64,000 bases of DNA from Callorhinchus milii (Eukaryota), in assembly GCF_018977255.1 (NCBI RefSeq), contig NW_024704770.1, positions 620,001 to 684,000 on the forward strand, read 5' to 3'. This document shows positions 1-23,829 of the stretch, piece after piece. The stretch's first letter is position 1; each line of letters begins with the position of its first letter. The position numbers and the translations under genes were made by a program. Under the pieces are notes generated by a model. That model was not told the origin of the DNA, searched no databases, and worked only from the letters and a program-made list of their open reading frames with translations.

Positions 1-139
1 GCCTTGCCTTCGGCATGTCCCTTGCCCGCTTTGCTCTGCCATCGATGACTGGGGTTTCAGCCGCTACTCATCTCAAACTCTGGAACTCTCTGCCTCAATC
101 CCACGACTGTGTTCCTCTAAGGTGACAGAGACATAGCGC

Positions 140-310
140 ATTTGGGGATTGAAGAGGAAAGGAGATCAGTATATGAAGGATAGAGCCTCGAAAAGGTATG
201 AGGGTAACAAGAGCAGCAAAGCTCAATGCACACCTTCATCTGTCAGTCCGTGCAGACTCGATGGGCCGAATGGACTCCTTTGTGTTATACATTTCTCTGA
301 TTCTGTTATA
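140..310 (+). mobile_element. CR1-type LINE 3' end fragment (also at ~12615-12785)
   Basis: gatgggccgaatggactcc...attctgt resembles the CR1 3' terminal motif. ORF 149-391 is incidental. Confidence 0.45.
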
Positions 311-1365
311 CCTTCTCTGAATTTGAATGGTTTCAAAGCTGCCATAAGATATGTGGCTCTTAAACCAGGTTTTAGGAAAGGAACTGATTAAGTGTGAGTC
401 TGGCTGACATGTCACACTGAGCCACATTGTACAGCAAAAGCTCCATACATCGAATCATTCCTTGTGAAACAGATTTCTTTTTTAAAAATCCTGATATTGG
501 TGTTTTCTGGTCTTCCACATCCCTATTATACATAGAGAAGAGGCCTTAGAGTTCCAAAGCACAGTAGCAATAATGGGCAATGTGTTTTAACATAACGAGG
601 GTTTATTTATATAATTCAGTGGTTAATTTTGCTTATTATGGATGATAAATAATTACACAAATTTATAAAATTGTTATTCGCCATTTCTTGGTTTACATAT
701 TTCATCTGATTTTTGAAACACTGTCGAAGTTAACAAATTCAAAAATCATCACCGTTCCTCTTGGAATATTACGCAGTGGTTTCCTCAGTACCAGACTGCT
801 ATTTGCTGAGGTATTGTGCACTTGGTATATGTGAGAAGATAATAATAATAATCCTTCATTTAATAATTGGTATCAAGATGACATTTCAGAAGATCACTGG
901 ATTCTGCATTTTACAGGATGATAAAAATCCAAGAGAGGTCGGAACGTTAGGCCCCAATTTGCTACTGCAAATAATGTATTGATTCAATAACGTTTACTGA
1001 ATTATTAAAGGTGAGGCTATTCGACATACGTGAATGAGATGTGCAAGTATTCTGGGATAGTCACTGAGTTCGAAAGCAATTGAAACAATTTGAAGAAAAC
1101 GCTGCTGAACATCACACAGAATTACATTTCTAATCAAACACTTTAATGCAAATGAATAATTCCCGTTGAATAATCAATAATCCTTTGAGGATGTCCCTCA
1201 GCACTTTACAGGATTTACTGCAAAATGCACGAACTATATTTTGTGTACGAACATATTAGAAACAAATTAAAGACAACACAACAGAATATGATATAGCTTC
1301 ACACTTTTTACCTCACAATTTCTATTGATATAAATTATTTTTTCTGTGCTGATTGTTTCTCACAG

Positions 1366-2288
1366 TTAATTTGCTGGCGATTGTGATCCTGTCAAGAGGA
1401 AAGTGCGGACTCTCCAAGTACATCACTCAGTACTTGATAGCCATGACAGTGGCTGATCTCCTGGTTGTCCTTGTGGATGTTTTGTTGACCAAAATTAACA
1501 ATCTGTATTTCCCATTAACTATCTTATTCTACACTCCAGTGTGTAGTGTTAAAGCTGTGCTGCTGACTGCAACTCTCCACAGCTCTTTGTGGTTCACTGT
1601 CGCTTTCACTTTCGATCGTTTTGTGGCCATTTGCTGCCAAAAGCTGAAACCAACATATTGTACGGAGAGAACGGCCACAGTGGTTATTGTAACTCTGTCT
1701 GTTTTCAGCTGCTCAGTGAACATTCCCTGGTACTTTACAACTGATCCTTACATTATACTTAATGATACGCCGTGGTACTGTGTCTTCAAACCAAGCTTTT
1801 ATACCTCGGCCCCCTGGAAAGCGTTTGAAAGGCTTCACCGTGTTGTTGCTCCCATGTTTGGTTTTGCTTTGATTTGCCTGTTCAATGCTCTGATTATCCG
1901 GCACATTCTGATGGCCAGTAAAGTCCGCAGGAGGCTTCGCGGTCAGAGAAATGCTGAGAAAACTATTGATCCCGAGTTAGAAAGCAGAAAAAAATCCGTT
2001 ATTTTACTCTTCGCCATATCGGGCAGTTTTATACTGTTGTGGATAACGCAAATCATATTTTCTTTGAAATGGCAACTTTCCAATTATAATTACAGCAAAA
2101 CATTGGTCAGTAACACGCGGTTTATCGTCCAAGAAACCGGAGTCATGCTTCAAAGGTTGAGTTGCTGTACCAACACCTGTATTTACGCATTGACTCAGAC
2201 TAAGTTCAGAGACGAGCTTAAGAGAGGGTTAGTTTATCCATTTCGTATTATTGCCGAATTAATGATAAAACATCGTAAACGCAGGTAA
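1366..2288 (+). CDS. Rhodopsin-class GPCR (GPR139/GPR142-like family), copy A, main coding exon; exon 1 lies upstream of the window
   Basis: Acceptor ttctcacag|TT, phase 1. Open frame VNLLAIVILSRGKC...AMTVADLL...FTFDRF...IPWYF...SCCTNTCIY...KRR*. Hydrophobic helices, DRY-like DRF and NPxxY-like NTCIY. Confidence 0.92.
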
Positions 2289-2504
2289 GAAAGAAGTTGG
2301 CTTCACACACTGTTGAACTTCAGGGACATTGGTGAATGTCTCCACAAGCAGAGACGCCTTCCAACATCATGAGCAGATATCAATAAAGCATCGTTTCCTT
2401 CCAAATCTTGTGACTATCTGTAAAGTTAAACTCCTGCCCCCGAAACATTGAAGTGAATGTCCTTTGACTTGATGAAGGAATGTTTGATTTTGGTTCAGGT
2501 GTGT

Positions 2505-2607
2505 GGAGTAAAGGAAAATACCCAATGTTTCGCTCTGCCCGGGAATCAAACCCATGTCCTCTCGCTTACGAGTCAAGCGCTCTAACCACTGAGCTACAGG
2601 ACTCCAC
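2505..2607 (-). mobile_element. tRNA-derived SINE head (copy at ~14971-15073)
   Basis: Minus strand gtggagtcctgtagctcagtggttagagc...gggtttgattcc has A-box and B-box. Same head occurs at 33758, 44456, ~45038 and ~49855. Confidence 0.85.
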
Positions 2608-2759
2608 ATTCTGCTGGTAATAAACGGGGAGAGAAGGTGCCTTTTGCCCTATAATATATAGTGAAGTGATGTGAGCCTCGACAGCGGAGGCCACGACCGG
2701 TGTCAGTGGGGACACACCGGCTCTCATTTCTCACCGTGCAATTCTGTTATACTCTCCAG

Positions 2760-3004
2760 CAGCGACACACCTGGTGACAGCCTGACATGTGCACAACAGC
2801 CACGTGTGTGTGAGGTCCTGCAGGAGATGGTGGTTCCCCAACACGTGGTCAGGAGAGAAGGGCACAAACTGTCAGACCGGTGTCTTCACTGTGAGTCACT
2901 GGTGTTGGATCAAGTGGATGTACTGTCCACATCAAACTACTACTGTTGTTTCCTTCACTTCCCAAAGCATCTTCTCATGTGGGCGGTGAACAGCACCGAC
3001 TCCG
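2760..3004 (+). CDS. Candidate internal exon of unknown product (phase 2 to phase 1), copy A
   Basis: Branch-like ctcac, acceptor actctccag|C, 245 nt open (SDTPGDSLTC...NYYCCFLHF...NSTDS), donor CCG|gtaaag. No recognisable domain. Confidence 0.35.
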
Positions 3005-3109
3005 GTAAAGCTTTCCCACTGCAACGGCATCTTTCACAGCATTTGTGATCTTTCAGACTGACTCTCCAGTGGCAGCACTGAGGTTTAGCACCGCATTGAC
3101 CTTAAAATG

Positions 3110-3395
3110 ACCATAACCTGCCCAACCCGCCCAACCCGCCACCATAACCCTCCCAACCCGCCCAACCCGCCACCATAACCCGCCCAACCCGCCCAACCCG
3201 CCACCATAACCCTCCCAACCCGCCCAACCCGCCACCATAACCCGCCCAACCCGCCCAACCCGCCACCATAACCCGCCCAACCCGCCACCATAACCCGCCC
3301 AACCCGCCCAACCCGCCACCATAACCCGCCCAACCCGCCCAACCCGCCACCATAACCCGCCCAACCCGCCCAACCCGCCACCATAACCCGCGCAA
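3110..3395. repeat. Minisatellite, ~31-bp unit ccataacccgcccaacccgcccaacccgcca (copy at ~15577-15868)
   Basis: Direct tandem repeats; they generate the repetitive spurious minus-strand ORFs. Confidence 0.95.
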
Positions 3396-3489
3396 CCCAC
3401 CTATCCCTCTCCCCCCACCGGTCGCTCTTAGTCTCAGTGCATTTTTGCTGCCGTCACCGACAAGAGCTGTTACCCCAAAATGCTCCCAC

Positions 3490-4360
3490 CCCCGTCCCCA
3501 CCTCTGTGACCTCCTCACCCCCCACCAACCCGTCCGCTCCCTCTGCTCAGTGGCCTCCGGCCCCCGCCTCGCCAGCCTTCAGCCTCTCTGCCCCCACCCT
3601 TTGGAACTCCATCCGACTCCCACTCCGCCTCACCCCCTCCTGTGCCTCTTTCAAGACCTGTCTCAAGACCCTCCTCCTGGACCGAGCCCCCACCCTCCGC
3701 GCCCTCCACCCCTCCTGATCCCAACCACCTGCCCGGGTGCGGATCCCTGACTGTCGGGCGCCTCGGACGTCCTCCTGACGTGAAAGGCGCTTTACAAATC
3801 TAATTTGTTATTGTTGTGTTTCTCACAATATCTGTGTCCCCGCACTTTCCGCCCCACCATTGGGTCGGACATTCAGCATCTCCGCCCCCACCCTGGAACT
3901 CCATCCCCAAATCCCTCCACCTCACCCCCTCTCTCACCTCCTTCAGGTCGCGTCTAAAGACCTTCCTCTTCGACCGTGACTTCAGCCCCAACTCCTGTCC
4001 TCCACCCCCAACCCCCAGCCCTCCACCCCCAACCCCAGCCCTCCACCCCAACCCCCTGCCCTCCACCCCCAACCCTCTGCTCTTCACCCCCAACCCCAGC
4101 CCTCCCCCAACCCCAGCCCTCCACCCCAACCCCCTGCCCTCACCCCCAACCACCTGCCCTCCACCCCCGACACCCTGCCCTCCAACCCCAACCCCCTGCC
4201 CTCCACCCCAAAACCCCTGTGCTTCACCCCAACTCCCAGCCGTTCACCCCTCCTGACCCCAATATCCAACTCAGGTCCAGTAACCCCTGACTGTCCAGTG
4301 CCCTGGAACGTCTTTCTGACATGAAGAGCGCTTTACAATTGTCTGTAAAGTGTTGTTGTT
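3490..4360 (+). mobile_element. Two L2-type LINE 3' end fragments with internal C-rich repeats (copy at ~15955-16860)
   Basis: Remnants reading AFSLSAPTLWNSI...SFKTCLKTLL and PWNSIPKSL...SFRSRLKTFLF, with tails gtgaaaggcgctttacaaat plus (ttg)n. Confidence 0.75.
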
Positions 4361-4565
4361 GTTGTTGTTGTGTGTCCCAATATCTGTGTGTGTGTGGGAG
4401 GGGGTGGAGGGCCTTTTACACGGTTGGTGTGGAATGAGGAATTATCCCCTACAAACTGCAGTTGAGGCTGCGGCCGTTGATGGTTTATAAAAGAGAATGA
4501 GGCGGATGATGGATGAGGGAATATTAAAGGCTTCTGGGCAGTGATCGCGGGAGAGACGAGGGCAG

Positions 4566-4857
4566 ACATTTCCTGAGGTTGTGGGCGGTTGCCATCAAAC
4601 CCACACTGCCCGGCGGTGCTGCTCGTGTGCAGCTGTTCCCAACCGTTCACTCTGTCATTTGGAGCAAAGTGGTTGGTTTCGAGGCCTATGTTGTGGCCGT
4701 GAGCTGATGCCCCAGTGCAGGCGGGGGAGCAGCGCCGTGTTGGGGAGGCCGACCTGTGGATGGGATGGTGACCTGAGGTCCTGTCTGACAGCTCCAGGAG
4801 ATGTCAGAGATCCCAACACATACACCACACTGAGGACACTGAGGAAATAACCTGAGG
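4566..4857 (+). pseudogene. Decayed SRCR (scavenger receptor cysteine-rich) exon, copy A
   Basis: With frameshifts it reads LRL-GG...KVV/RGLCCGREL...GSSAV..PTC..DGDLRSC...HTED..IT(stop), echoing SRCR LRLVGG / AxVVCRQLGCG / C...L..C / HxEDxxVxC. Acceptor is poor. Confidence 0.45.
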
Positions 4858-4989
4858 CTTGTGGTTGGTAAGAAATCTGGAGACTGCGGTCTTTATTCAA
4901 TGCTGCATTTTTGATAACTTTAAACTATTTAAATGAGAAAAGCCATTGTGCGGTACAGGGGGCACTGTGTGTGCTAATAACTAAAGGGG

Positions 4990-5815
4990 TGACGCTGTGG
5001 GGTGTGAATGGGGTGTGGGGTGTGTACTAGTTATGGTGAGTGTGTGTTATTCACGAGGGTTGTGTGGTATTAATGTGGCAAATATGCTTTATAGCATTAA
5101 ATATACATAGGAATTGTGGGGTATTAATGGGTGTGGGGTATCAATGGAGTTGTGGTAAGAATGGAGTTTGTGGTATCAATGGAGTTTGTGTGGGGTATCA
5201 ATGGAGTTTGTGGTAAGAATGGAGTTTGTGGTATCAATGGAGTTTGTGCTATTAATGTGGTGTGTGGAGTACTAATGGGGAGTGTGGGGTATTAATGGGG
5301 TGTCGGGTATCAATGGAGTTTGTGGTGTCAATGGAGTTTGTGGTATCAATGTGGTGTGTGGAGCATTAATGGGGTGTGTGGGGTATTATGGGGTGTGGGG
5401 TATTTTTGTGAATGGAGTGTGAGTTATTAATGGGGTTTCGGGTATTAATGGGTTGTTTGATGTAATAATGGGGTGTGGGGTATTAAGGGGGTGTGGGTAT
5501 TAATGAGGTGTGGGATATGAATTGGGTGTGGGGTATTATTGGAGTGTGGGCTATGAATGGGTTTGATGTAATAATGGGATGTGGGGTATTAATGGGTTGT
5601 TTGATGTAATAATGGGGTGTGGGGTATTAAGGTGATGTGGGTTATTAATGAGCTGTGGGATATTACTGGTGTATGTAGTGTTAATGAGGTCTGTATTATT
5701 AATGGGGTGTGGGGGGTATTAATGGGGTGTGGGGGTTATTAATGGGGTGTGGGGGGTATTAATGGGGTGTGGGGGGTATTAATGGGGTGTGGGGGGTATT
5801 AATGGGATGTGGTGA
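4990..5815. repeat. Degenerate attaatggggtgtgggg satellite (copy at ~17480-18195)
   Basis: Many imperfect tandem copies; length differs between the duplicates. Confidence 0.9.
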
Positions 5816-5819
5816 TGTG

Positions 5820-6128
5820 TGGGAGGAATTGCCTCACAAGCGAGAGGACGTGGGTTTGATTTCCGGGCAGAGCAAAATGTTCGGAATATTCCTCACTCCC
5901 ACACACGCTGCTGTTTCCCGGCAGTGAGGAGCAGAACAATAATCCTTCAAACAAAATGTAAGAATCCCTTATTCCATGACTGTTTGTGGGACGCTGCTGT
6001 GCGCAATTGTCTGCCGTGTTTCGCCCACAAATTATACATCAATTGACTTTACAGTGCACTCTAAAGCACTTTGAGATGTCTCGAAGATGTGATAAGGCTC
6101 TGTAGCAAACGTAAGGATTATTATTATA
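5820..6128 (+). mobile_element. SINE of the dominant family (tRNA head, conserved body, (att)n tail)
   Basis: Body gactgtttgtgggac...gcaatt...cccacaaa...aagcactttgaga is shared by many copies in the window. Confidence 0.8.
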
Positions 6129-7315
6129 TCTCAGTCAAAAGTGATCAGTGTAAATGTGTATTGTCTCCTCGCTGGGCCCCACTGTCTGCTCGTGCGTCAA
6201 CTCCCCGACCCTCTTCCTGACCTCAGATTCTTCATGGTCTCACTCCTTCCTACCCCGGCTGTCTCCGGCCTCGGCCTCTGCTCTGACACCTCTGCTCTAC
6301 TGCTCACTGCTCTCTTCCTCCAGTGACGGCACCTTCAGCTTTTACTCTGGACGGTGCTCTACATTTCCCTCTCTCGAAAGACGTTTCTCTCTGACTCTGC
6401 ATTTGGCCAACACCCTGACCCCGTTTCCACTTTTGAAGCCACCCGCGGGTTTGCTCCTCCCTCCCTCTGCCCCCTATTAACAGCAAACCTTTCCACTCCC
6501 GCTCCCCCCGCTCCCCCCGCTCAGTGGGCACTGGGCTGTTGCATGTTCCCTGCTCTGCCGACTTATACAACAATAATAATAATTTTGTCACTCATTCCAC
6601 TACTGCTTGTAGGGTAATACCTCGTGCAATTAGCTGCCGTGTTTCTCCCACAAAATATATACAATTCACAGAATATTCTGTCAATCGCTTTGAGACAAAT
6701 GTAAGGATTATTATTACTATTACCCCCACACCACAGGAGGTTGGGTGTTCAGCTTTGCTGCCTCCACCCTTTAGGACTCCATCCCAGAATCCCTACACCT
6801 CGCCCCCACGCTTCCTTCCTTCAAGGCACATCTCAAGACCTTTCTGTTGGACTGTGCCTTCAGTCTCCCTCCCACCCCTACCCCCACCCTTCTTCATTCC
6901 AACCCCAGCTTGTGTGCAAATCATTAAATGTCCAGCGCCCTGGACGTGCTTTGGAAAGGCCGTACTTAGATGTAATTTGTTATTGTTGTTTGTCTTCTTA
7001 TTTGGGAATTCCCGTTGGCAGATGAAGTGTTTTGGGACTTTAATCGTCCAGGAAGGGTACTGTCTAACAGTACAAGTTGTGAAGAGTTTGAGACAGTCAT
7101 TCATGAAAGGCGCTGTGTGAATAATAATAATTATAATAATAACAATAATCCTTGCATTTGATATAGAGCCTTATCACGTCGCTGCAACAGCTCAAAGCAC
7201 TTCACAGGATATACTGTAAAGCGTAGTAACTGTGTGATTTTTGGGCAAAACGTTGTGTTAAGTTCTGAAATGCAGTCAGGTTTGTAAACTTGTCTGTAAC
7301 ACAAACTGATTTAAT

Positions 7316-7350
<35 letters not shown>

Positions 7351-7647
7351 CCTCTCTGTGTAGCTGAGGCCTCCACTGCGATGTAAAACCAAGATAGCGA
7401 CGGATTTAATCAGATTGGAAACTGCGGCTGGTGCTGAGCTAAAGAGCCTGTGGTGAGAGCTGTGTCTCTGGTCCCTTCTCCTGATCAGGTTAAACTTTAC
7501 ATTGAGCTGAAATGCCATCTTATTACACTGACTTGATCAACACGTGATCTCTCAACCCAGGTCCTGGCAGCCACACACTTGAGGCAAATGTCTGATGGAA
7601 ATGCACAGAGATTCTCTGATCTCTACACAGTTACATGGTTTTGTCAG

Positions 7648-7985
7648 CGTGGCTCAGTTGGCTGCGTTCTTCCCTCTGAGTCAGATGTTTGTGGCTTCAA
7701 ACCCCACGTCAGGATTTGGAACTCACATAGTCTAAGCTGGAATTCCAAAGCTGATGCTGGGAGTGCACTGCATTTGTTGAGGTGCCGTCCTTTGGATGAG
7801 ATGTTAAACCAAGGCCCTGTCTGTCTGTTCAAATGGATCTTAACGATCCCACCATTGGGAAACAGGGGAGTTTCTCCCGGTGTCCTGGCCAACAATCCCC
7901 CCAAACATTGGCCACTCACTTCATGGCTATGTGTGGGATGTTGCTGTGTGCAACTTAGCTGCTGTGTTCCCAATAAAGTGCAGTC
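7648..7985 (+). mobile_element. Deu-domain tRNA SINE (DeuSINE/SacSINE1-like; copy at ~20030-20367)
   Basis: tRNA-like head gtggctcagttgg...ggcttcaaacc followed by gaggtgccgtcctttggatgagatgttaaaccaaggccctgtctg, the Deu central domain as I recall it. Confidence 0.65.
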
Positions 7986-8497
7986 CTGTAGCTTAATGGT
8001 TTGATCGCTCGCCTGGCAAGCACCAGTACCTGGGTTCGATTCCTGGCACGGCAAAACATTGGGCAAGTTTCCTTACGCCACACCCTCTGTCCTGCCTGAA
8101 GTCCTTCCTGTTCAGCAGTGCCTATGGTCACTTCGCGCCTCTTCCTGGTTCAGCAACATGTTCCGCCACTGTCAAGCGTTCTGGGACGCTATCCTGCGTG
8201 AGGGCGCTATATATATATGCAAGTTGTTGTGTGTCTGTTTAATGTGGTGAGTGACAGTGTATGTTGTGGACATAAGCAGCAGCCAATTTGCAGACATCTG
8301 TGGAGTTAGTGACCAACTCTGAGAGAACCTCATTGAGGTGTAAACATTTCAAATGGGATTCAAAATGTACAGTCACATACGGAGTATCTGTAAAGCTCAT
8401 TGGGACTCCCTCCCAATGTGAGACACTGCACCAAATGTCAGGACTATTGTTGTTGTTTTATTGCGATTTTGTGACTGTTATGTTTTGTGTCACAAAG

Positions 8498-8623
8498 GGC
8501 ACCGAGTGCGGAGAGGGCAGGTGATGTCCACACTTGATGCCGTGTGTGTAACGCTGGGAACGCTGCTGGCCCTCGTGCTGATGGCACTCGCTGTACAAAT
8601 CAAACACAATGTGCCCAGAGGAG
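8498..8623 (+). CDS. WC1/SCART/CD163-like transmembrane exon, duplicated copy A (no cytoplasmic exons follow in this copy)
   Basis: cacaaag|GG...AGAGGAG|gtgaga, 126 nt, phase 1-1, GHRVRRGQVMSTLDAVCVTLGTLLALVLMALAVQIKHNVPRG. Same translation as 20883-21008. Confidence 0.65.
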
Positions 8624-9357
8624 GTGAGAGCCCGACACGTGCCCTGGAGTCAGGCGGAGCCGTGTGGGGAGTGAACTGTATCAGTTAGAGAATCGGTGAC
8701 AAGGGACAGTCACGGCACTGTTAGCAGAACAACAGCGGAGACTTTAGAGAAGATTTCTTCACTCACAGGATTGTTAGTGTCTGGAATTCTTTCCCATGTG
8801 GTATTGAGGCTGATCCACAAGATCACACAATGGTTTCGATGAAGAAGGCTCTTTGCCTCTTCCGATCTCATCTCTCCAGAACACCCACCCGAACATCAAC
8901 CCCCCCCCCCCACCAACCCCCCACCTCCATCACCAAATGGAGCTGCTTTTAACACAGGATACTCTTTGTGTTCGTCAAATAGAAATTGCCATTTCCTGTC
9001 GCGAGTATGTTCCAAGATGTTTGACTTTTGTGGCTTGGCCCCTGAGCTGGGGTTGGGTCCATGGGCGGGTGAGCCGGGGAAACATGATCAAAGTCATAGT
9101 CAAAGAGGAAGGTCTTGAGATGGGACTTTAAAGAGGTGAGGGAGGGCCCGAGTCTGAGGGATTCCAGGATGGAGTTCCAAATAGTGTGGGCAGATCGGCT
9201 GAAAGCCGGACCGCCAATGGTGAGGCGGGCAGGGCAGGGGATGTGAAGCAGACCAGTGCCCACTGAGCAGGAGTGGGCAGGATGGCAATGATTAAGGAGG
9301 TCACAGAAGTAGAGTGGAGCAAGACATTGGAGGGCTTTAAAGTGAGTACAAGGATCT

Positions 9358-10115
9358 CCTCCTCCACAACACCCTCTACTCCACACTTGACCCTCACCTC
9401 CCGTACTGTCTCCTGCTCTCGCTCCTCCCCTGGCTCACAACGCACCTCCGCTCATTGAAGAGCCAGGTGCGGGCCGTTGAATGCACCTGCCTCAAATCTG
9501 GGCTAACGGTCCACTGACAAATCTGGCTGGACCTCCTCAGAATCTATCACTCCACTCTAGCCTCGGCCAAGTCATCCTTCTACTCCAGGATAACTCTGGA
9601 GGCGAAGAACAACCCCAGGCTACTGTTTTCTACCACATCCTGACTCCTCCGTCCCCCCCGCCACCCCGCGCAGGTCATCTCCTCCACCCTTCACTACGAG
9701 GAGATGTTGGATTTCCTTGAATCCAAAATCAAGGGAATCCGCTCCATGGTCACTACCCGTCCAACTTCCACCCACCACCCACCCCTTCTCTCCCACACTC
9801 CAACTCCCACCCACCACCCACCCCTTCTCTCCCACACTCCAACTCCCACCCAGCCCCTCCCCTTCCCTCCCACACTCCGACTCCTACCCATCCTCCCCTA
9901 CACCCTTGGTCTCCTCCTCTTCACCCTCTATATGCTCCCCCTGTGGTGACATCATCCGCAGACATGGGGTTAACTTCCACATGTATGCGGATGACACCCA
10001 ACTCTACCGTTACTCCAAGGTCCTTGAAAGAGTTGTCACCTCCCAACTGCGCACTTTCCCCTCCAGCCGTGCATTATTCGAACCCCTTCAGTCGGGTTTC
10101 CGCGCTGCGCACAGC
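9358..10115 (+). mobile_element. Scrambled L2 LINE reverse-transcriptase fragments
   Basis: Translates to GDIIRRHGVNFHMYADDTQLY (YADD motif) and FEPLQSGFRAAHSTE, in rearranged order. Confidence 0.8.
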
Positions 10116-10251
10116 ACAGAACCATTCACTGTGAGTTCCTTTCGGTTCAAATTCCAAATAAAAACCTACAGTTCCACTTTGCTGCCGCCAGAGGGCGGTG
10201 TTGCACTGTGTGACTTCCCACCAGATTCTCAGTCACTTCACTTGTCCTCCT
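10116..10251 (+). repeat. ~136-bp element with CTCF-like core; inverted copy at 26448-26583
   Basis: Reverse-complement match with few mismatches. Contains ccgccagagggcggtgttg. Confidence 0.85.
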
Positions 10252-11566
10252 TGAGGGGAGGGGAGCAGTGTCTGTGTCTGTGTGTCTCTCTGTCTCCCTT
10301 ATAGGTATCTGAGATGGAGAGGAGACCCCCCCCTCCCCCCGCACACAGGGCTGTTGGAGAGGGAGAGGAGCCGCCATGGCCCCCACTCTCTCCTGGACTC
10401 CTCACTGTCGCTCTGATGGTCAGTGTGGATGAGGTGAAGGACACATGACTATCACTTGATGATCTTTGACCCTTATCTGTGTGTATTACCAGTTGTGTCC
10501 CTCTGTCCTGTGGACTGCATTGCACCCACAGAGAGGTGAGCAGCTCCTGCTCAGGAGCAGCATCTGTGATGGTGGAATCATTGCTCAATGGAGAGCGGTG
10601 TGTGGACCCACGACAAACAGCAAGATCATGGCACTGCTCCCACACATTTCATGCTGAGTTGTGTTGGCCACCAGAAGCTCGGAGGGAGTTACTCTAACCT
10701 GCCATCAGCCGAGTGAGGGCTGAAACCCGCACTTGTCTGATATCGAATGACAAACTGGACTGTGCGGCTCAGGACACATACGTGGGTGTCCATGGAGCTC
10801 AACTGGCTCCAAGTTAACAGCCTTCAAGACCTTTATGAAGTTACCACTGCAATCTCCTCAACCAGTAGTGACCTGCGTGCTTCCATCACCCAGCAAGCCT
10901 CGGCATGTTTAATGATCCCGCCCTACCGGTCCCACCATCAGGTCATGGGCTTTCGGCCAATCTGCCGCCCATCCTCTATAACTCAGCCCCAGAGAACCCT
11001 CAAACCCTTCATGAGGGGCACTTTATTGATGCAAATTGTTGTTGTTATTGTCTTTGAACCCAGGATTCACTCGCGCACACACCCCTTTACGGTCCGTATC
11101 AAGAGCTCCCGCATTGACCACATCCTTGTTTATGTTTCCCTTCCCTGACCCCATGTCGGGTCTCAATGATTCATGTTCAAGTGTCTGAATGTAATGTGTT
11201 TATAAACTCGATGAGATCCCATGCTCTATCCCTCATGAATTTGCTATATAGATGCAATTTATATTTCTTGTCATTTCTGTAAAACGTTTCAATAATGTTG
11301 TTCTGCTCGTTCTGTATTTAGTTTATTCGACGCTTTATTTTTTATGTATTTATCTTCAATTCACAATAACCAATGTAATCGAGTATAAGATGTGCAATTC
11401 TCAAGTGAATACATTATGTTGTTTGTTCACATGTCTGGAACTAATTGCATTTGTGATCCACGCTGTAGATTCGTTGCTTCAAGTACAAATGTCTTTGAGT
11501 GTGACCTCAGAGTGTTCATTGAAGCCTCTGCCTTCAGCCACACAATGTCGTAGTGTAAAACAGAGT

Positions 11567-11636
11567 ATGGAACTTCCAATACTGTACGCAATATTGGCCA
11601 TTTACTACCCCATTCTTGTAGCGTTTGGAATTCCAG
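11567..11636 (+). CDS. GPCR copy B exon 1 (MELPILYAILAIYYPILVAFGIP)
   Basis: ATG, YYPIL...GIP N-terminus/TM1 motif, donor CCAG|gtatgt phase 1, in frame with acceptor at 13830. Confidence 0.85.
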
Positions 11637-13829
11637 GTATGTCTATTTGGTCACATTTATTAGCAATATTCAGTAGATTACTGCAATGGGCAGAAGAAGT
11701 TTTCTGAAGTGACATATCAGGTTATTCAAGTTGGTCGGGAAAAGGAGAGAGAGGAATATGTATTGAATATTGTAAGGTGCAGAGCAGCAAATGGATTGGG
11801 GAGTGCAGGTACATAAGTCCTTGAACATAGTGACATAAGTGGAAAAGACGGTGATTAAAGGTTTACAAAGATTTAGAAAAATTTACAAAGAAAGTACAAC
11901 ACAGAAACAGGCCACTCAGATCAACCAGTCCGTGCCGGTGTTTATAACCACTTGGGTCTTTACTCCCTCCCATAGCCTCTATTCCTCTCTCTCTCACGTG
12001 AAGGTCTATGTTCCTCGTGAATGCAGCGAATAAAATCATCGATTCAGGCAACAACTCCTGCCCTCTGTGTGAAGCAGTTTCTTCTCCTTGCCCTCTGCGG
12101 GGCAATCTCCCTCAATCTCTCTGCCCTCTGCGTGAAGCAGTTCCTTCTAATTTTTATTTTTTATCCCATCGTCACTGTCCCTGGTTACTGACTCCCCCAA
12201 AACAGCCCCAAATTGGCACAATCCTCACGACAGGATAGATCCCCAACTGTCGTTCCTACCCCACATCCCTGACCACAATCACTCGACTTCACGTCCACCC
12301 GTTGCCCACCTCAGACCCTGTCTCACACTCAACAGCTGAAACCCTCGTTGATTGACGGATTGATTTCAAAGTCCTGAATCTCACTCACAAATGAGTTTGG
12401 GTCCCAGCACCTCCTCAGGTCCCTACTTCTCTGACCTGCTTACACCACACAGCTCTAAGCCCTTTCACTCAGCTGCCTTGCCTTCGGCATGTCCCTTGCC
12501 CGCTTTGCTCTGCCATCGATGACTGGGGTTTCAGCCGCTACTCATCTCAAACTCTGGAACTCTCTGCCTCAATCCCACGACTGTGTTCCTCTAAGGTGAC
12601 AGAGACATAGCGCATTTGGGGATTGAAGAGGAAAGGAGATCAGTATATGAAGGATAGAGCCTCGAAAAGGTATGAGGGTAACAAGAGCAGCAAAGCTCAA
12701 TGCACACCTTCATCTGTCAGTCCGTGCAGACTCGATGGGCTGAATGGACTCCTTTGTGTTATACATTTCTCTGATTCTGTTATACCTTCTCTGAATTTGA
12801 ATGGGTTTCAAAACTGCCATAAGATATGTGGCTCTTAAACCAGGTTTTAGGAAAGTAACTGATTAAGTGTGAGTCTGGCTGACATGTCACACTGAGCCAT
12901 ATTGTACAGCAAAAGCTCCATACGTCGAATCATTCCTTGTGAAACAGATTTCTTTTTTAAAAAATTGGTATTTTCTGGTCTTCCACATCCCTATTATACA
13001 TAGAGAAGAGGCCTTAGAGTTCCAAAGCACAGTAGCAATAATGGGCAATGTGTTTTAACATAACGAGGGTTTATTTATATAATTCAGTGGTTAATTTTGC
13101 TTATTATGGATGATAAATAATTACACAAATTTATAAAATTGTTATTCGCCATTTCTTGGTTTACATATTTCATCTGATTTTTGAAACACTGTCGAAGTTA
13201 ACAAATTCAAAAATCATCACCGTTCCTCTTCGAATATTACGCAGTGGTTTCTTCAGTACCAGACTGCTATTTGCTGAGGTATTGTGCACTTGGTATATGT
13301 GAGAAGATAATAATAATAATCCTTCATTTAATAATTGGTATCAAGATGACATTTCAGAAAATCACTGGATTCTGCATTTTACAGGATGATAAAAATCCAA
13401 GAGAGGTCGGAACGTTAGGCCCAATTTGCTACTGCAAATAATGTATTGATTCAATAACGCTTACTGAATTACTAAAGGTGAGGCTATTCGGCATACGTGA
13501 ATGACACCTGCAAGTATTCTGGGATATGAACTGTGTTTGAAAGTGATTGAAACAGTATGAAGAAAACGCTGCCGAACATAACACAGATTTATATTTATAA
13601 TCAAACACTTTAATGCAAATGAATAATTCCCGTTGAATAATCAATAATCCTTTGAGGTTGTCCTTTGGCACTTTGCAGGATTTACGGTAAAATGCACGAA
13701 CTGTATTTGTGTACGAACATATTAGAAACAAATTAAAGACAACACAACAGAATATGATACAGCTTCACACTTTTTACCTCACAATTTCTATTGATATAAA
13801 TTATTTTTCTGTGCTATTGTTTCTCACAG

Positions 13830-14754
13830 TTAATTTGCTGGCAATTGTGATCCTGTCAAGAAGAAAGTGCGGTCTGTCCAAGTGCATCACTCGCTACTTG
13901 GTAGCAATGGCAGTGGCAGATCTCCTGGTTGTCCTTGTAGAATTATTGTTGAACAAAATTAACAATCTGTATTTCCCATTAAGTTTCTTATTCTATACTC
14001 CAGTGTGTAGTGTCAGACTTGTGCTGATGTCTGTAACACTCCACAGTTCTTTGTGGTTCACTGTCGCTTTCACTTTCGATCGTTTTCTAGCCATTTGCTC
14101 CCAAAAGTTGAAACCAAAATATTGCACAGAGAGAACGGCCACAGTGGTTATAGCAACGCTGTCTGTGTTTAGCTGCTCTGTGAGCATTCCGTGGTATTTT
14201 ACTCTTGATCCTTATGTTATAGTTAACGATATACCGTGGTACTGTGTCTTCAAATCAAACTATTATACGATGGCCTCCTGGAAAGTGTTTGAAAGGCTTC
14301 ACCGTGTTATTGCTCCCGTGTTTGGTTTTGCCTTGATTTTTGCCTGTTCAATGCTCTGATTATCAGGCACATACTGATGGCCAGTGATGTCCGCAGGAGC
14401 CTTCGATGTCAAAATCATTCTGAGAAAACTATTGATCCAGAGTTAGAAAACCGAAGAAAATCTGTCATCTTACTCTTTGCGATGTCGGGCAGTTTTATTC
14501 TGTTGTGGACCACTTTTATTGTATATTCCTTCAAATGGCAACTTTCCAATTTCAGTTATAGCGAAACTTTTGTCAATAACATGCGTTTTATCGTCCAAGA
14601 AACCGGAATCATGCTTCAAAGGATGAGTTGTTGTACCAACACCTGTATTTATGCAATGACTCAGACTAAGTTCAGAGAAGAGCTCAAGACAGGGTTAGTT
14701 TATCCATTTCATATCATTGCCGAATTAATGATAAAACATCGTAAACGCAGGTAA
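13830..14754 (+). pseudogene. GPCR copy B exon 2, frameshifted (+2 T at ~14337-14341)
   Basis: ttgatttttgcctg versus ttgatttgcctg in copy A. Exon is 925 nt versus 923 nt. The frame continues in ORF 14377-14754. Confidence 0.8.
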
Positions 14755-15225
14755 GAAAGAAGTTGGCTTCACACACTGTTGAACTTCAGGGACATTGGTG
14801 AATGTCTCCACAAGCAGAGACGCCTTCCAACATCATGAGCAGATATCAATAAAGCATCGTTTCCTTCCAAATCTTGTGACTATCTGTAAAGTTAAACTCC
14901 TGCCCCCGAAACATTGAAGTGAATGTCCTTTGACTTGATGAAGGAATGTTTGATTTTGGTTCAGGTGTGTGGAGTAAAGGAAAATACCCAATGTTTCGCT
15001 CTGCCCGGGAATCAAACCCATGTCCTCTCGCTTACGAGTCAAGCGCTCTAACCACTGAGCTACAGGACTCCACATTCTGCTGGTAATAAACGGGGAGAGA
15101 AGGTGCCTTTTGCCCTATAATATATAGTGAAGTGATGTGAGCCTCGACAGCGGAGGCCACGACCGGTGTCAGTGGGGACACACCGGCTCTCATTTCTCAC
15201 CGTGCAATTCTGTTATACTCTCCAG

Positions 15226-15470
15226 CAGCGACACACCTGGTGACAGCCTGACATGTGCACAACAGCCACGTGTGTGTGAGGTCCTGCAGGAGATGGTGGT
15301 TCCCCAACACGTGGTCAGGAGAGAAGGGCACAAACTGTCAGACCGGTGTCTTCACTGTGAGTCACTGGTGTTGGATCAAGTGGATGTACTGTCCACATCA
15401 AACTACTACTGTTGTTTCCTTCACTTCCCAAAGCATCTTCTCATGTGGGCGGTGAACAGCACCGACTCCG
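15226..15470 (+). CDS. Candidate internal exon (phase 2 to phase 1), copy B
   Basis: Same as 2760-3004, with the same splice sites. Confidence 0.35.
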
Positions 15471-17058
15471 GTAAAGCTTTCCCACTGCAACGGCATCTTT
15501 CACAGCATTTGTGATCTTTCAGACTGACTCTCCAGTGGCAGCACTGAGGTTTAGCACCGCATTGACCTTAAAATGACCATAACCCGCCCATACCCACCCA
15601 ACCCGCCACCATAACCCTCCCAACCCGCCCAACCCGCCACCATAACCCGCCCAACCCGCCCAACCCGCCACCATAACCCTCCCAACCCGCCCAACCCGCC
15701 ACCATAACCCGCCCAACCCGCCCAACCCGCCACCATAACCCGCCCAACCCGCCACCATAACCCGCCCAACCCGCCCAACCCGCCACCATAACCCGCCCAA
15801 CCCGCCCAACCCGCCACCATAACCCGCCCAACCCGCCCAACCCGCCACCATAACCCGCGCAACCCACCTATCCCTCTCCCCCCACCGGTCGCTCTTAGTC
15901 TCAGTGCATTTTTGCTGCCGTCACCGACAAGAGCTGTTACCCCAAAATGCTCCCACCCCCGTCCCCACCTCTGTGACCTCCTCACCCCCCACCAACCCGT
16001 CCGCTCCCTCTGCTCAGTGGCCTCCGGCCCCCGCCTCGCCAGCCTTCAGCCTCTCTGCCCCCACCCTTTGGAACTCCATCCGACTCCCACTCCGCCTCAC
16101 CCCCTCCTGTGCCTCTTTCAAGACCTGTCTCAAGACCCTCCTCCTGGACCGAGCCCCCACCCTCCGCGCCCTCCACCCCTCCTGATCCCAACCACCTGCC
16201 CGGGTGCGGATCCCTGACTGTCGGGCGCCTCGGACGTCCTCCTGACGTGAAAGGCGCTTTACAAATCTAATTTGTTATTGTTGTGTTTCTCACAATATCT
16301 GTGTCCCCGCACTTTCCGCCCCACCATTGGGTCGGACATTCAGCATCTCCGCCCCCACCCTGGAACTCCATCCCCAAATCCCTCCACCTCACCCCCTCTC
16401 TCACCTCCTTCAGGTCGCGTCTAAAGACCTTCCTCTTCGACCGTGACTTCAGCCCCAACTCCTGTCCTCCACCCCCAACCCCCGCCACGCCCTGCTCCAC
16501 CCCCAAACCCCAGCCCTCCACTCCCCAACCCCCCCTGCCCTCCACCCCCAACCCTCTGCTCTTCACCCCCAACCCCCCTACCCTCCACCTCCACCCCAAC
16601 CCCTGCCCTCCACCCCCAACCCCCTGCCCTCCACCCCCCCCCAACCCCCTGCCCTCCACCCCCAACCCCTGCCCCCACCCCAAACCTGCCCTCCACCCCC
16701 AAACCCCTGTGCTTCACCCCCAACTCCCAGCCGTTCACCCCTCCTGACCCCAATACCCAACTCAGGTCCAGTAACCCCTGACTGTCCAGTGCCCTGGAAC
16801 GTCTTTCTGACATGAAGAGCGCTTTACAATTGTCTGTAAAGTGTTGTTGTTGTTGTTGTTGTGTGTCCCAATATCTGTGTGTGTGTGGGAGGGGGTGGAG
16901 GGCCTTTTACACGGTTGGTGGTGGGAATGAGGAATTATCCCCTACAAACTGCAGTTGAGGCTGCGGCCGTTGATGGTTTATAAAAGAGAATGAGGCGGAT
17001 GATGGATGAGGGAATATTAAAGGCTTCTGGGCAGTGATCGCGGGAGAGACGAGGGCAG

Positions 17059-17350
17059 ACATTTCCTGAGGTTGTGGGCGGTTGCCATCAAACCCACACT
17101 GCCCGGCGGTGCTGCTCGTGTGCAGCTGTTCCCAACCGTTCACTCTGTCATTTGGAGCAAAGTGGTTGGTTTCGAGGCCTATGTTGTGGCCGTGAGCTGA
17201 TGCCCCAGTGCAGGCGGGGGAGCAGCGCCGTGTTGGGGAGGCCGACCTGTGGATGGGATGGTGACCTGAGGTCCTGTCTGACAGCTCCAGGAGATGTCAG
17301 AGATCCCAACACATACACCACACTGAGGACACTGAGGAAATAACCTGAGG
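17059..17350 (+). pseudogene. Decayed SRCR exon, copy B
   Basis: Same as 4566-4857. Confidence 0.45.
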
Positions 17351-19698
17351 CTTGTGGTTGGTAAGAAATCTGGAGACTGCGGTCTTTATTCAATGCTGCA
17401 TTTTTGATAACTTTAAACTATTTAAATGAGAAAAGCCATTGTGCGGTACAGGGGGGCACTGTGTGTGCTAATAACTAAAGGGGTGACGCTGTGGGGTGTG
17501 AATGGGGTGTGGGGTGTGTACTAGTTATGGTGAGTGTGTGTTATTCACGAGGGTTTGTGTGGTATTAATGTGGCAAATATGCTTTATAGCATTAAATATA
17601 CATAGGAATTGTGGGGTATTAATGGGGTGCGGGGTATCAATGGAGTTTGTGGTGTCAATGGAGTTTGTGGTATCAATGTGGTGTGTGGAGCATTAATGGG
17701 GTGTGTGGGGTATGGGGGGTATTTTGTGGTGTATGAATGGGATGTGGGGTGTGAATGGAGTGTGGGTTATTAATGGGGTTTCGGGTATTAATGGGTTGTT
17801 TGATGTAATAATGGGGTGTGGGGTATTAAGGGGGTGTGGGTAATTAATGAGGTGTGGGATATGAATTGGGTGTGGGGTATTATTGGAGTGTGGGCTATGA
17901 ATGGGTTTGATGTAATAATGGGGTGTGGGGTATTAATGGGGTGTGGGGTATTAATGGGTTGTTTGATGTAATAATGGGGTGTGGGGTATTAAGGTGATGT
18001 ATTAGGGTGTGGTATTAATGAGCTGTGGGATATTACTGGGGTATGTAGTGTTAATGAGGTCTGTATTATTAATGGGATGTGGGGGGTATTAATGGGGGTA
18101 TTGTGTGGGGGGTTATTAATGGGGTGTGGGGGGTATTAATGGGGTGTGGGGGGGGTATTAATGGGGTGTGGGGGGTATTAATGGGATGTGGTGATGTGTG
18201 GGAGGAATTGCCTCACAAGCGAGAGGACGTGGGTTTGATTTCCGGGCAGAGCAAAATGTTCGGCAATATTCCTCACTCCCACACACGCTGCTGTTTCCCG
18301 GCAGTGAGGAGCAGAACAATAATCCTTCAAACAAAATGTAAGAATCCCTTATTCCATGACTGTTTGTGGGACGCTGCTGTGCGCAATTGTCTGCCGTGTT
18401 TCGCCCACAAATTATACAGTCAATTGACTTTACAGTGCACTCTAAAGCACTTTGAGATGTCTCGAAGATGTGATAAGGCTCTGTAGCAAACGTAAGGATT
18501 ATTATTATATCTCAGTCAAAAGTGATCAGTGTAAATGTGTATTGTCTCCTCGCTGGGCCCCACTGTCTGCTCGTGCGTCAACTCCCCGACCCTCTTCCTG
18601 ACCTCAGATTCTTCATGGTCTCACTCCTTCCTACCCCGGCTGTCTCCGGCCTCGGCCTCTGCTCTGACACCTCTGCTCTACTGCTCACTGCTCTCTTCCT
18701 CCAGTGACGGCACCTTCAGCTTTTACTCTGGACGGTGCTCTACATTTCCCTCTCTCGAAAGACGTTTCTCTCTGACTCTGCATTTGGCCAACACCCTGAC
18801 CCCGTTTCCACTTTTGAAGCCACCCGCGGGTTTGCTCCTCCCTCCCTCTGCCCCCTATTAACAGCAAACCTTTCCACTCCCGCTCCCCCCGCTCCCCCCG
18901 CTCAGTGGGCACTGGGCTGTTGCATGTTCCCTGCTCTGCCGACTTATACAACAATAATAATAATTTTGTCACTCATTCCACTACTGCTTGTAGGGTAATA
19001 CCTCGTGCAATTAGCTGCCGTGTTTCTCCCACAAAATATATACAATTCACAGAATATTCTGTCAATCGCTTTGAGACAAATGTAAGGATTATTATTACTA
19101 TTACCCCCACACCACAGGGGTTGGGTGTTCAGCTTTGCTGCCCCCACCCTTTAGGACTCCATCCCAGAATCCCTACACCTCGCCCCCACGCTTCCTTCCT
19201 TCAAGGCACATCTCAAGACCTTTCTGTTGGACTGTGCCTTCAGTCTCCCTCCCACCCCCTACCCCCCACCCTTCTTCATTCCAACCCCCAGCTTGTGTGC
19301 AAATCATTAAATGTCCAGCGCCCTGGGACGTGCTTTGGAAAGGCCGTATTTAGATGTAATTTGTTATTGTTGTTTGTCTTCTTATTTGGGAATTCCCGTT
19401 GGCAGATGAAGTGTTTTGGGACTTTAATCGTCCAGGAAGGGTACTGTCTAACAGTACAAGTTGTGAAGAGTTTGAGACAGTCATTCATGAAAGGCGCTGT
19501 GTGAATAATAATAATTATAATAATAACAATAATCCTTGCATTTGATATAGAGCCTTATCACGTTGCTGCAACAGCTCAAAGCACTTCACAGGATATACTG
19601 TAAAGCGTAGTAACTGTGTGATTTTTGGGCAAAACGTTGTGTTAAGTTCTGAAATGCAGTCAGGTTTGTAAACTTGTCTGTAACACAAACTGATTTAA

Positions 19699-19732
<34 letters not shown>

Positions 19733-20882
19733 CCTCTCTGTGTAGCTGAGGCCTCCACTGCGATGTAAAACCAAGATAGCGACGGATTTAATCAGATTGG
19801 AAACTGCGGCTGGTGCTGAGCTAAAGAGCCTGTGGTGAGAGCTGTGTCTCTGGTCCCTTCTCCTGATCAGGTTAAACTTTACATTGAGCTGAAATGCCAT
19901 CTTATTACACTGACTTGATCAACACGTGATCTCTCAACCCAGGTCCTGGCAGCCACACACTTGAGGCAAATGTCTGATGGAAATGCACAGAGATTCTCTG
20001 ATCTCTACACAGTTACATGGTTTTGTCAGCGTGGCTCAGTTGGCTGCGTTCTTCCCTCTGAGTCAGATGTTTGTGGCTTCAAACCCCACGTCAGGATTTG
20101 GAACTCACATAGTCTAAGCTGGAATTCCAAAGCTGATGCTGGGAGTGCACTGCATTTGTTGAGGTGCCGTCCTTTGGATGAGATGTTAAACCAAGGCCCT
20201 GTCTGTCTGTTCAAATGGATCTTAACGATCCCACCATTGGGAAACAGGGGAGTTTCTCCCGGTGTCCTGGCCAACAATCCCCCCAAACATTGGCCACTCA
20301 CTTCATGGCTATGTGTGGGATGTTGCTGTGTGCAACTTAGCTGCTGTGTTCCCAATAAAGTGCAGTCCTATAGCTTAATGGTTTGATCGCTCGCCTGGCA
20401 AGCACCAGTACCTGGGTTCGATTCCTGGCACGGCAAAACCTTGGGCAAGTTTCCTTACGCCACACCCTCTGTCCTGCCTGAAGTCCTTCCTGTTCAGCAG
20501 TGCCTATGGTCACTTCGCGCCTCTTCCTGGTTCAGCAACATGTTCCGCCACTGTCAAGCGTTCTGGGACGCTATCCTGCGTGAGGGGCGCTATATATATA
20601 TATGCAAGTTGTTGTGTGTCTGTTTAATGTGGTGAGTGACAGTGTATGTTGTGGACATAAGCAGAAGCCAATTTGCAGACATCTGTGGAGTTAGTGACCA
20701 ACTCTGAGAGAACCTCATTGAGGTGTAAACATTTCAAATGGGATTCAAAATGTACAGTCACATACGGAGTATCTGTAAAGCTCATTGGGACTCCCTCCCA
20801 ATGTGAGACACTGCACCAAATGTCAGGACTATTGTTGTTGTTTTATTGCGATTTTGTGACTGTTATGTTTTGTGTCACAAAG

Positions 20883-21008
20883 GGCACCGAGTGCGGAGAG
20901 GGCAGGTGATGTCCACACTTGATGCCGTGTGTGTAACGCTGGGAACGCTGCTGGCCCTCGTGCTGATGGCACTCGCTGTACAAATCAAACACAATGTGCC
21001 CAGAGGAG
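20883..21008 (+). CDS. WC1/SCART/CD163-like receptor: transmembrane exon
   Basis: AG/GT sites, phase 1-1. CVTLGTLLALVLMALAVQ matches the CxxLGxLLxLVLxxLxxQ pattern I recall for WC1/SCART TM segments. Confidence 0.7.
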
Positions 21009-22393
21009 GTGAGAGCCCGACACGTGCCCTGGAGTCAGGCGGAGCCGTGTGGGGAGTGAACTGTATCAGTTAGAGAATCGGTGACAAGGGACAGTCACGG
21101 CACTGTTAGCAGAACAACAGCGGAGACTTTAGAGAAGATTTCTTCACTCACAGGATTGTTAGTGTCTGGAATTCTTTCCCATGTGGTATTGAGGCTGATC
21201 CACAAGATCACACAATGGTTTCGATGAAGAAGGCTCTTTGCCTCTTCCGATCTCATCTCTCCAGAACACCCACCCGAACATCAACCCCCACCCCCCCCAC
21301 CAACCCCCCACCTCCATCACCACATGGAGCTGCTTTTAACACAGGATACTCTTTGTGTTAGTCAAATAGAAATTGCCATTTCCTGTCGCGAGTATGTTCC
21401 AAGATGTTTGACTTTTGTGGCTTGGCCCCTGAGCTGGGGTTGGGTCCATGGGCGGGTGAGCCGGGGAAACATGATCAAAGTCATAGTCAAAGAGGAAGGT
21501 CTTGAGATGGGACTTTAAAGAGGTGAGGGAGGGCCCGAGTCTGAGGGATTCCAGGATGGAGTTCCAAATAGTGTGGGCAGATCGGCTGAAAGCCGGACCG
21601 CCAATGGTGAGGCGGGCAGGGCAGGGGATGTGAAGCAGACCAGTGCCCACTGAGCAGGAGTGGGCAGGATGGCAATGATTAAGGAGGTCACAGAAGTAGA
21701 GTGGAGCAAGACATTGGAGGGCTTTAAAGTGAGTACAAGGATCTTAAACTCGATCTTCTGGGGGATTGGAGTCAGTGGGTACAGATGAATGTGGGGGATG
21801 AGAGTGGGGGGAGATGTGGGGGATGGAGCCCAGTGGGAGAGAGTTCTGGATAGTAATGACTGGATGTGTTTGTATTTATATAGTGCGCTTCACATAGGAT
21901 AGTGTCTCGGCTAAAACATTAAGAGATGTGGGGCAGAGCCGGGACTTCAGACTCATGATAAAAACACAGAAATCCACAGGTAACAGATACAGGGGGTTAT
22001 GGCCTCCTGGGAATGTGGGATCTTCTGCCCCAACATTGGTTGAGGCAGATTCTGTGCTGCTTTTGATGGGAATTAAAATCCAGTAGTTACCCCAACCCAC
22101 ATGTCTTCGGTCCTGCGCCTAATACACTGTAGAATTTGGTAAGTGGGTCATCGCTCCAGTGAGAGACAACACATTTCATTCCAATAAATATCTCAGGAAT
22201 TTCCAAGTGTAGTTGGGATACATGGAGTTCTCGATTTCGTTTGGATGCTCTTGCGCATAGTGACTGGGTTTCCGCATGTGTCAGACGCCCGGGTGACCAA
22301 AAAATATTCCCCATAAGGGAACAGCCCAAGTGCTTTGAGAATGTTCTTACATGAGGTGCTGTAAAATACCAGGATTATTCTTTATGATTCCAG

Positions 22394-23174: not shown

Positions 23175-23829
23175 GTAAAAGGTTAAAAACAGAAACACAC
23201 ACTTGTTTGTCTGCAGTGAAGAGAGAGAGAGAGAGAAAACAATATTTTTCAGCATTTTATCAGGTCTCAGTGCCGTCTGACAGCACTTTACAGCGATCGC
23301 TGCTGTGTGACGGTCTCCTGTGGGCAAACACAGTGAGGTGCTGAGCACAGGCAGAGGGTGAAGGAACATTAATGTGGGGGATGTTGGCCCCGGACACTGG
23401 GAGAAACATTCTTCTCTTTTCCCGTAGCTTCACAGGATGTTTCCCGCACTCCTGCACAGGCAGACAGTGATTCCCCATTAAAACACAGACCATCCACTTG
23501 GGGTCTGAAAGGGCTGAGGCCCAAACCTGTCATTATACACAGCGACAACGACAGGTTATAGTGTAGAGTCCTGCACTTGGGTTAGAGCCCTCCCCGAGCA
23601 GCGAGAGACCACAGCCCCATTCCCGGGCAGGTCAACACCTCAGGCAAGTTTCCTTACTCCACACTCCAACGAGGAACCCGGTTGTTCGTGGATTGGAGGA
23701 TCGCTTTCCGGCGGTAAAAATCCCTTCAATGAATGAATGAATGAATCAATCAGTTGATCAGTGAGTGAGTGAGTGAATCAGAAAGTAAATAAACAGATTA
23801 TTTAATGAATGAATTGACCATCGAATCCA

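Follow-up and report, generated by a model that had tools for sequence, protein, structure and literature searches.

Olfactory receptor clusters are reportedly an example of interlocus gene conversion, and the introns of the primate red and green opsin genes are said to be more alike than their exons. The BEX/WEX/GASP family on Xq22 contains chimaeric genes in which the coding sequence has a history separate from that of the non-coding sequence, with gene conversion involved (PMC1274310), and the tandem paralogues of HMA4 in Arabidopsis halleri show mosaic divergence through interlocus conversion (10.1101/2025.10.29.685298). Here we describe a mosaic pair of tandemly duplicated GPR139-like receptor genes, copies A and B, in a 64,000-nucleotide window of the Callorhinchus milii genome (NCBI RefSeq assembly GCF_018977255.1, contig NW_024704770.1, positions 620,001 to 684,000 of the forward strand; all coordinates below are counted from the first base of this window, and both copies lie on its plus strand). 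The two units are near-identical along most of their length and enclose a patch, covering part of the intron and most of the second coding exon, in which they differ nearly as much as old paralogues do. We consider it probable, with moderate confidence, that a young tandem duplication was followed by DNA-templated replacement of this patch in one copy from a diverged member of the same family.

Set beside the described systems, the locus is best read as a case of ordinary multigene-family evolution, and it represents no new diversification system or mechanism. Inverted exon/intron conservation in tandem G protein-coupled receptor (GPCR) genes is common to this locus and to the red/green opsins. 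In the opsins, however, introns were homogenised and a few exon sites are held apart by selection, whereas here divergence is highest at synonymous sites and one copy is no longer intact. The resemblance to olfactory receptor clusters lies in a sharp-ended tract of about 1 kb, a large tandem family, abundant donors and the involvement of pseudogenes; here the background is a very young segmental duplicate, so that the tract shows excess divergence and not excess similarity. In BEX/WEX/GASP, too, paralogues resemble each other far more in their non-coding than in their coding parts (PMC1274310), but there a short 5’ untranslated motif has been homogenised repeatedly among old genes, while here the flank is young and 11 kb long and the coding part would be the one imported. 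As at our locus, the tandem copies of HMA4 are much more diverged in some stretches of the gene than in others. Exchange among the tandem copies lowers divergence in HMA4, whereas the patch described here must come from outside the pair.

Copy A (1-9357) is repeated in tandem as copy B (12475-21744), as established by self-BLAST and a MAFFT alignment. The period measures 12,474 bp where the copies begin and 12,387 bp where they end. The alignment holds 203 substitutions in 9160 ungapped columns; the flanks are colinear, large copy-specific insertions are absent and the alignment gaps fall in tandem-repeat blocks. With the patch excepted, the copies are ~99.3-99.9% identical across 9.3 kb, repeats included. 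A first-pass annotation, made from the letters of the window alone, had described a young 12.4-kb tandem duplicate that takes in its repeats, and the colinearity and identity of the units bear this out. Outside the patch 56 of 7906 sites are substituted (0.71%), a figure that falls to 24 of 6889 (0.35%) when two poorly aligning repeat blocks are set aside. The left flank, which is the distal part of intron 1 (1-992 in copy A, 12475-13459 in copy B), differs at 9 of 984 sites (0.9%). The right flank of copy A (2250-9357), comprising the last 12 codons, the stop codon and 7 kb of downstream sequence, is nearly identical to its counterpart in copy B (14716-21744), whose last base is also the end of the duplicated unit; divergence here is 0.12-0.34% with the two repeat blocks (3901-4300 and 5001-5800) excluded. 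There are no differences at all between the copies at 2250-3118, the first 870 bp past the 3’ edge of the patch.

The patch itself was delimited by a maximum-likelihood two-breakpoint fit, which places it at 993-2249 in copy A and 13460-14715 in copy B with a likelihood-ratio statistic of 376. These breakpoints are almost the same as the limits, ~990-2250 and ~13460-14716, outside which the first-pass annotation had called the copies near-identical. Identity along the formal alignment is far from uniform, with 147 of 1254 aligned sites substituted inside the patch (11.7%) against 0.35-0.71% outside it. The claim that the coding exon is diverged beyond its flanks holds as far as the excess is concerned. 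The excess is not limited to the exon, however: the patch takes in 373 bp of intron (993-1365), stops 39 bp short of the stop codon and is split by a near-identical island. On either side of this island lie an intronic sub-patch (993-1236 in copy A, partner 13460-13703 in copy B), where 28 of 244 sites differ (11.5%), and an exonic sub-patch (1379-2249, partner 13843-14715) with 118 substitutions in 871 sites (~13.5%). The island at 1237-1378 carries a single substitution in 139 bp (permutation p<0.0002) and covers the splice acceptor together with the first 13 bases of exon 2. According to the fitted breakpoints and the list of differences, the diverged tract of copy B (13460-14715) is built in the same way, from an intronic sub-patch, an island and an exonic sub-patch.

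At the protein level, 253 of the 311 exon 2 residues are identical between A and B (81.4%) and 58 differ, in agreement with the earlier manual count of about 58 differences and ~81% identity. Exon 2 of copy B, listed there as a receptor exon, is not intact, for it carries a 2-bp frameshift. The extracellular loops contain differing residues at about twice the density of the rest (15 of 43 positions, against 43 of 268 elsewhere; p=0.006, with helix limits taken from an AlphaFold model). A GC excess is absent from both patches (0.43 vs 0.40), and changes between weak and strong bases number 45 vs 60; GC-biased conversion was accordingly considered and rejected, neither patch being GC-enriched.

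Several further features of the proximal intron were observed. Both copies contain a weak internal repeat there (1065-1161 vs 1242-1339 in copy A, ~64-65% identical, with a period of ~177 bp). A related receptor gene, paralogue D, lacks the sequence corresponding to 13150-13734 of copy B, the stretch that holds the intronic sub-patch. Among short-read contigs of other individuals, one form (depth 22-31) found in three of three individuals fits copy B up to 13178 and resumes at 13820, skipping ~640 bp of proximal intron. An insertion that is polymorphic or specific to certain paralogues may account for the stretch around 13178-13820, and the intronic sub-patch would lie inside it. Elsewhere in the left flank, six substitutions, a 7-bp indel and a 1-bp indel are clustered within 236 bp (267-502 of copy A against 12741-12970). 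At ~2.5% divergence, compared with 0.35% for the flanks, this cluster may be a second, smaller exchange tract.

How old the exon divergence is, and under what regime it accumulated, can be read from the substitutions themselves. Nonsynonymous (dN) and synonymous (dS) divergence between the A and B exons, obtained from Nei-Gojobori counts, are ~0.10 (0.105) and 0.30-0.32, respectively, giving a dN/dS of 0.32-0.33; across all windows of 60 codons the ratio lies between 0.21 and 0.57 and nowhere exceeds 1. Four-fold degenerate sites are the most diverged class, with 25 of 98 differing (25.5%), and the dS of the patch is about 90 times the flank divergence of 0.35%. That the neutral sites have diverged most is the opposite of what a young duplicate would show under positive selection or local hypermutation. 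Paralogue D, the gene of P0002 (sequence L001), provides a yardstick. The exon dS of 0.32 between A and B is close to those between A and D (0.35) and between B and D (0.45), and the A and B exons are therefore nearly as old as their split from D. At the nucleotides where A and B differ, D has the A state at 60 sites and the B state at 49, and the agreement of eight outgroup proteins is split in a similar way, so both lineages carry derived states of their own. A runs test for mosaicism inside the exon relative to D gave 49 runs where 54.9 were expected (p=0.15). Among columns at least 90% conserved in 29 homologues, copy A departs at 2 and copy B at 4. So few departures in B indicate that it was constrained through most of its history and, as judged from these sequence comparisons, its frameshift is probably recent. 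The data say that the exon divergence is old and not accelerated. With dN/dS well below 1, the enrichment of differences in the loops reflects the weaker constraint that is usual for loops.

We can now propose a history for the locus. A recent tandem duplication would have taken in a complete ~12.4 kb unit, with both exons, the 2.2-kb intron between them and 7 kb of sequence downstream. Later, ~1.26 kb of one copy, the proximal intron together with almost the whole of exon 2, would have been rewritten by copying from a gene of this large GPR139-like family that is far older than the duplication. The process would be interlocus (ectopic) gene conversion, presumably by way of break repair through synthesis-dependent strand annealing. 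The sequence comparisons show the mosaic with its limits, its contrast in age and its selection regime, whereas we infer the conversion event, its direction and the existence of a donor. Because the tract contains 373 bp of intron, the template would have been DNA and not a transcript. The unconverted 139-bp island could be the result of patchy heteroduplex repair or of two separate events, and the 2-bp frameshift of copy B could have been gained later or have arrived with the imported patch. If the patch derives from an old paralogue, the 58 residue differences are inherited paralogue divergence under purifying selection and not new change at this locus. Of the explanations that the first-pass annotation had listed, conversion or cassette exchange from another paralogue is the best supported, given that the dS of 0.32 is near the paralogue distance of 0.35-0.45; its restriction of the exchange to the exon did not stand.

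The sequence surroundings would accommodate such an exchange. Homology within the family passes the 3’ edge of the patch, with D aligning as far as B 14872, 157 bp beyond, which leaves room for an exchange to resolve; an earlier idea from a first BLAST search, that the 3’ edge marks the end of homology to D, was dropped when a sensitive alignment was seen to continue to this point. For the 5’ side and for candidate donors we turned to short-read contigs from five resequenced individuals of the same species, of which three, together with one RNA run, were placed on 9100-15000. Several contigs per individual fall on 13237-13827 at a likeness of at least 80%, which is indirect evidence for homology past the 5’ edge. 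Potential donors are represented by ~3-35 contigs per individual on single exon positions at the same likeness, a cut-off that is too permissive, since it admits ~13,000 contigs per individual, mostly repeats and paralogues. Genuinely old duplicates could not have flanks that are 99.7% identical, whereas a short exchange within the conserved exon region, the only part that family members still have in common at 80-90% identity, is feasible and mechanistically easy, and a length of ~1.26 kb is said to be within the usual range of interlocus conversion tracts. The wider consequence is that a paralogue-derived tract can make the coding exon of a very young duplicate look explosively evolved. Duplication dating and scans for positive selection in the cartilaginous-fish GPR139-like expansion must allow for such exchange.

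Nonetheless, a number of observations weigh against this history, at least in its simplest form. The donor was not found among the annotated proteins, which are at most 79% identical to either exon. Exact-protein look-ups with P0001 and with exon A returned no match, and when the C-terminal piece of B was searched at the protein level against short open reading frames of the run assemblies, only distant shark proteins were recovered. The third family member in the window, C, whose exon 2 lies on the minus strand at 57081-58007 (an intact 308-codon frame with a Pfam 7tm_1 match, 49% identical to A), has a dS above 1.6 relative to both A and B and is too diverged to have been the donor. Furthermore, divergence in the intronic sub-patch (11.5%) is significantly below that at four-fold exon sites (25.5%; p=0.003). 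A single event with a uniform donor fits this contrast poorly, and two events or a mosaic donor are needed. The flanks are themselves uneven, with 0.9% divergence on the left and 0.12-0.34% on the right, which implies a history beyond one duplication and one conversion. To account for the contrast between the sub-patches, the island and the uneven flanks, one has to suppose repeated exchange, a donor that was itself a mosaic or mismatch repair that acted patchily. Finally, the tandem arrangement is that of the assembly: among the contigs listed none bridges 9357/9358, which is explained by the high-copy repeats that flank the junction.

The unbridged junction leads to the question of whether A and B are separate genes at all. 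They could be two haplotypes of one locus that the assembly placed in tandem, the patch then being allelic, although paralogue conversion on one haplotype would still be needed to explain it. A flank divergence of 0.35% with small indels is within the allelic range, and the contigs of other individuals contain several signs that could be read in this way. The share of sampled A-exon words present varies by individual from 0.70 to 0.35 (0.70, 0.56, 0.43, 0.35), and among the contigs listed the B letters at 13231 and 13252 are unrecovered, as is that at 14416 in two individuals. Logan contigs, however, pop bubbles and break in repeats, and the absence of a variant from them proves little. Each of the five individuals contains a share of 0.63-0.69 of the words from a 5.9-kb stretch of B. 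No run of N, as would mark a gap, separates the two copies, and the second unit has 3.1 kb of its own, including exon 1, behind a clean junction. Matched unit contigs are 2.2-2.7 times deeper in individual X1 than in X2 or X4, whereas repeat-based coverage ratios are only ~1.4-1.5. This hints at more copies of the unit in X1, and so at a real and possibly polymorphic duplication. We regard an assembly artefact as unlikely on balance. Contigs over 12578-13808 carry 30-35 differences from B, close to the 33-38 to be expected of A-type sequence. The A-exon word shares, missing B letters and depth differences, together with the contig form that skips 13178-13820, hint that copy number and cassette vary among individuals, and the locus is possibly variable in both respects. 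They can be extended to a picture in which the exon 2 cassette has been exchanged repeatedly among paralogues and is still segregating, so that different individuals would have different cassettes in the same tandem slots, a standing polymorphism of a large orphan receptor family whose genes are interleaved with immunoglobulin M (IgM) clusters; we give this little credence. Among the RNA runs with any A-exon words, none contains more than 14% of them, and the RNA contig that falls on the exon has extra differences from both copies and hence belongs to another paralogue.

Other alternatives accept two genuine copies and differ in how the mosaic arose. The patch could have been written during the duplication itself, by template switching to a paralogous exon and back in the manner of fork stalling and template switching or microhomology-mediated break-induced replication (FoSTeS/MMBIR). 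This predicts the same mosaic end state, and the high-copy repeats on both sides of the duplication junction are a setting in which replication-based rearrangements occur. Both ends of the tract, however, lie within extended homology, whereas the joints of such events are more typically found at microhomology beside unrelated sequence, and a tract split by a 139-bp island would take four switches; we therefore hold this to be quite unlikely. More improbable still is the proposal, also raised in the first-pass annotation, that the tandem duplication is itself old and that conversion or unequal exchange between A and B homogenised the flanks but not the exon, which selection for distinct ligand specificities may have protected. 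Homogenisation of this general kind has precedents (PMC1274310; 10.1101/2025.10.29.685298), and the uneven flank divergence and the concentration of differences in extracellular loops would suit it. The exon dS matches that to D, however, and in a sensitive alignment D is colinear with the B unit through the upstream region, exon 1 and intron but only 65-70% identical to it. Conversion across more than 11 kb of non-coding sequence of that age, interspersed with lineage-specific insertions, is not credible. The A and B flanks are colinear and free of large copy-specific insertions. Protein selection cannot explain why the intronic sub-patch also escaped, and a frameshifted copy B and an exon dN/dS of 0.33 are also at odds with the proposal. 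The last possibility is rapid change confined to the exon after duplication, through diversifying selection or through hypermutation linked to the neighbouring antibody locus. The denser differences in the loops (p=0.006) and the presence of an IgM gene 25 kb away could be cited in its favour. Against this, synonymous and four-fold sites are the most diverged (dS 0.32 vs dN 0.105), 244 bp of intron have diverged by 11.5%, the excess of tandem substitutions is not significant (23 adjacent pairs vs 17 expected, p=0.07), and for the majority of the sites that differ, either the A or the B state also occurs elsewhere in the family. We find this possibility scarcely believable. The related suggestion of an immune-gene-like mode of diversification, made in the same annotation, is not supported, on similar grounds: dN/dS is 0.33 overall and 0.21-0.57 by window, the residues conserved in the family are kept and one copy is frameshifted.

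Conversion from a paralogue after a young duplication remains the account we prefer. At the junction, the sequence switches at 9357/9358 relative to 21744/21745. The left part of the second unit, with exon 1 of copy B, spans 9358-12474 and is without a partner in view because copy A is cut by the window start; the partner would sit to the left of the window. The second unit starts with a repeat of very high copy number, for which the summed contig k-mer depth reaches ~5x10^5 at 9888-10084. A contig from the RNA run begins to fit at precisely 9358, which places the duplication junction against the end of a repeat. A reverse-transcriptase-like frame (9717-10304, ..YADDTQLY..) was also observed in this part of the unit.

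Each unit contains a two-exon gene, separated by the 2.2-kb intron, whose relatives carry the automatic database label “probable GPR139/GPR142”. Coding exon 1 of copy B (11567-11636) consists of 23 codons and one base followed by a GTATGT donor. The peptide that it encodes, MELPILYAILAIYYPILVAFGIP, matches P0002, an annotated Callorhinchus protein, at the N-terminus, and the exon 1 region is colinear with paralogue D at ~70% identity. Exon 2 of copy A (1366-2288) encodes a GPR139-like class A GPCR in an intact frame, with a CAG acceptor at 1363-1365, an open frame of 311 codons from 1353 and a TAA stop codon at 2286-2288. It matches Pfam 7tm_1 with E=3.9e-18 and 66 bits (cut-off 30.5), and an AlphaFold2 model shows a seven-helix fold with a mean predicted local distance difference test (pLDDT) score of 81. 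Foldseek returns generic class A receptors for this model at TM scores of 0.6-0.7. The class A landmarks DRF, N1.50 and D2.50 are present. Exon 2 of copy B (13830-14754, the TAA ending at 14754) likewise follows a CAG acceptor but has a broken frame, owing to two extra T at 14337-14338 that turn the TTT of copy A into TTTTT at 14334-14338, and tblastn needs two frames (13817-14338 and 14341-14751) to cover it.

The closest database protein to exon 2, also from Callorhinchus milii, is 79% identical. By sequence, the closest solved structure is that of the human orphan receptor GPR139 (7VUG-7VUJ; E=3.7e-8, ~20-25% identity). GPR139 and the receptor in the window share an NxxxY motif without proline in transmembrane helix 7. 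The cartilaginous-fish genes constitute a large expansion in their own right. In the literature on GPR139 in sharks or other cartilaginous fishes, our search found no work on this expansion.

The neighbourhood of the duplicate contains the constant exons of an IgM heavy chain, visible as four open frames on the minus strand between 39568 and 42372: CH1 at 41779-42372, CH2 at 41000-41356, CH3 at 40254-40766 and CH4 at 39568-39936, the last ending in a secretory tail. Since these exons lie between copies A and B on one side and C on the other, receptor genes are present on both sides of an IgM cluster of the shark type. At 23758-25130 there are long minisatellite arrays, in which both strands carry open frames. 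Additionally, a proline-rich low-complexity block occurs as an inverted pair, with 27937-28716 matching 53332-52542 at 88% identity within the region 52118-53332.

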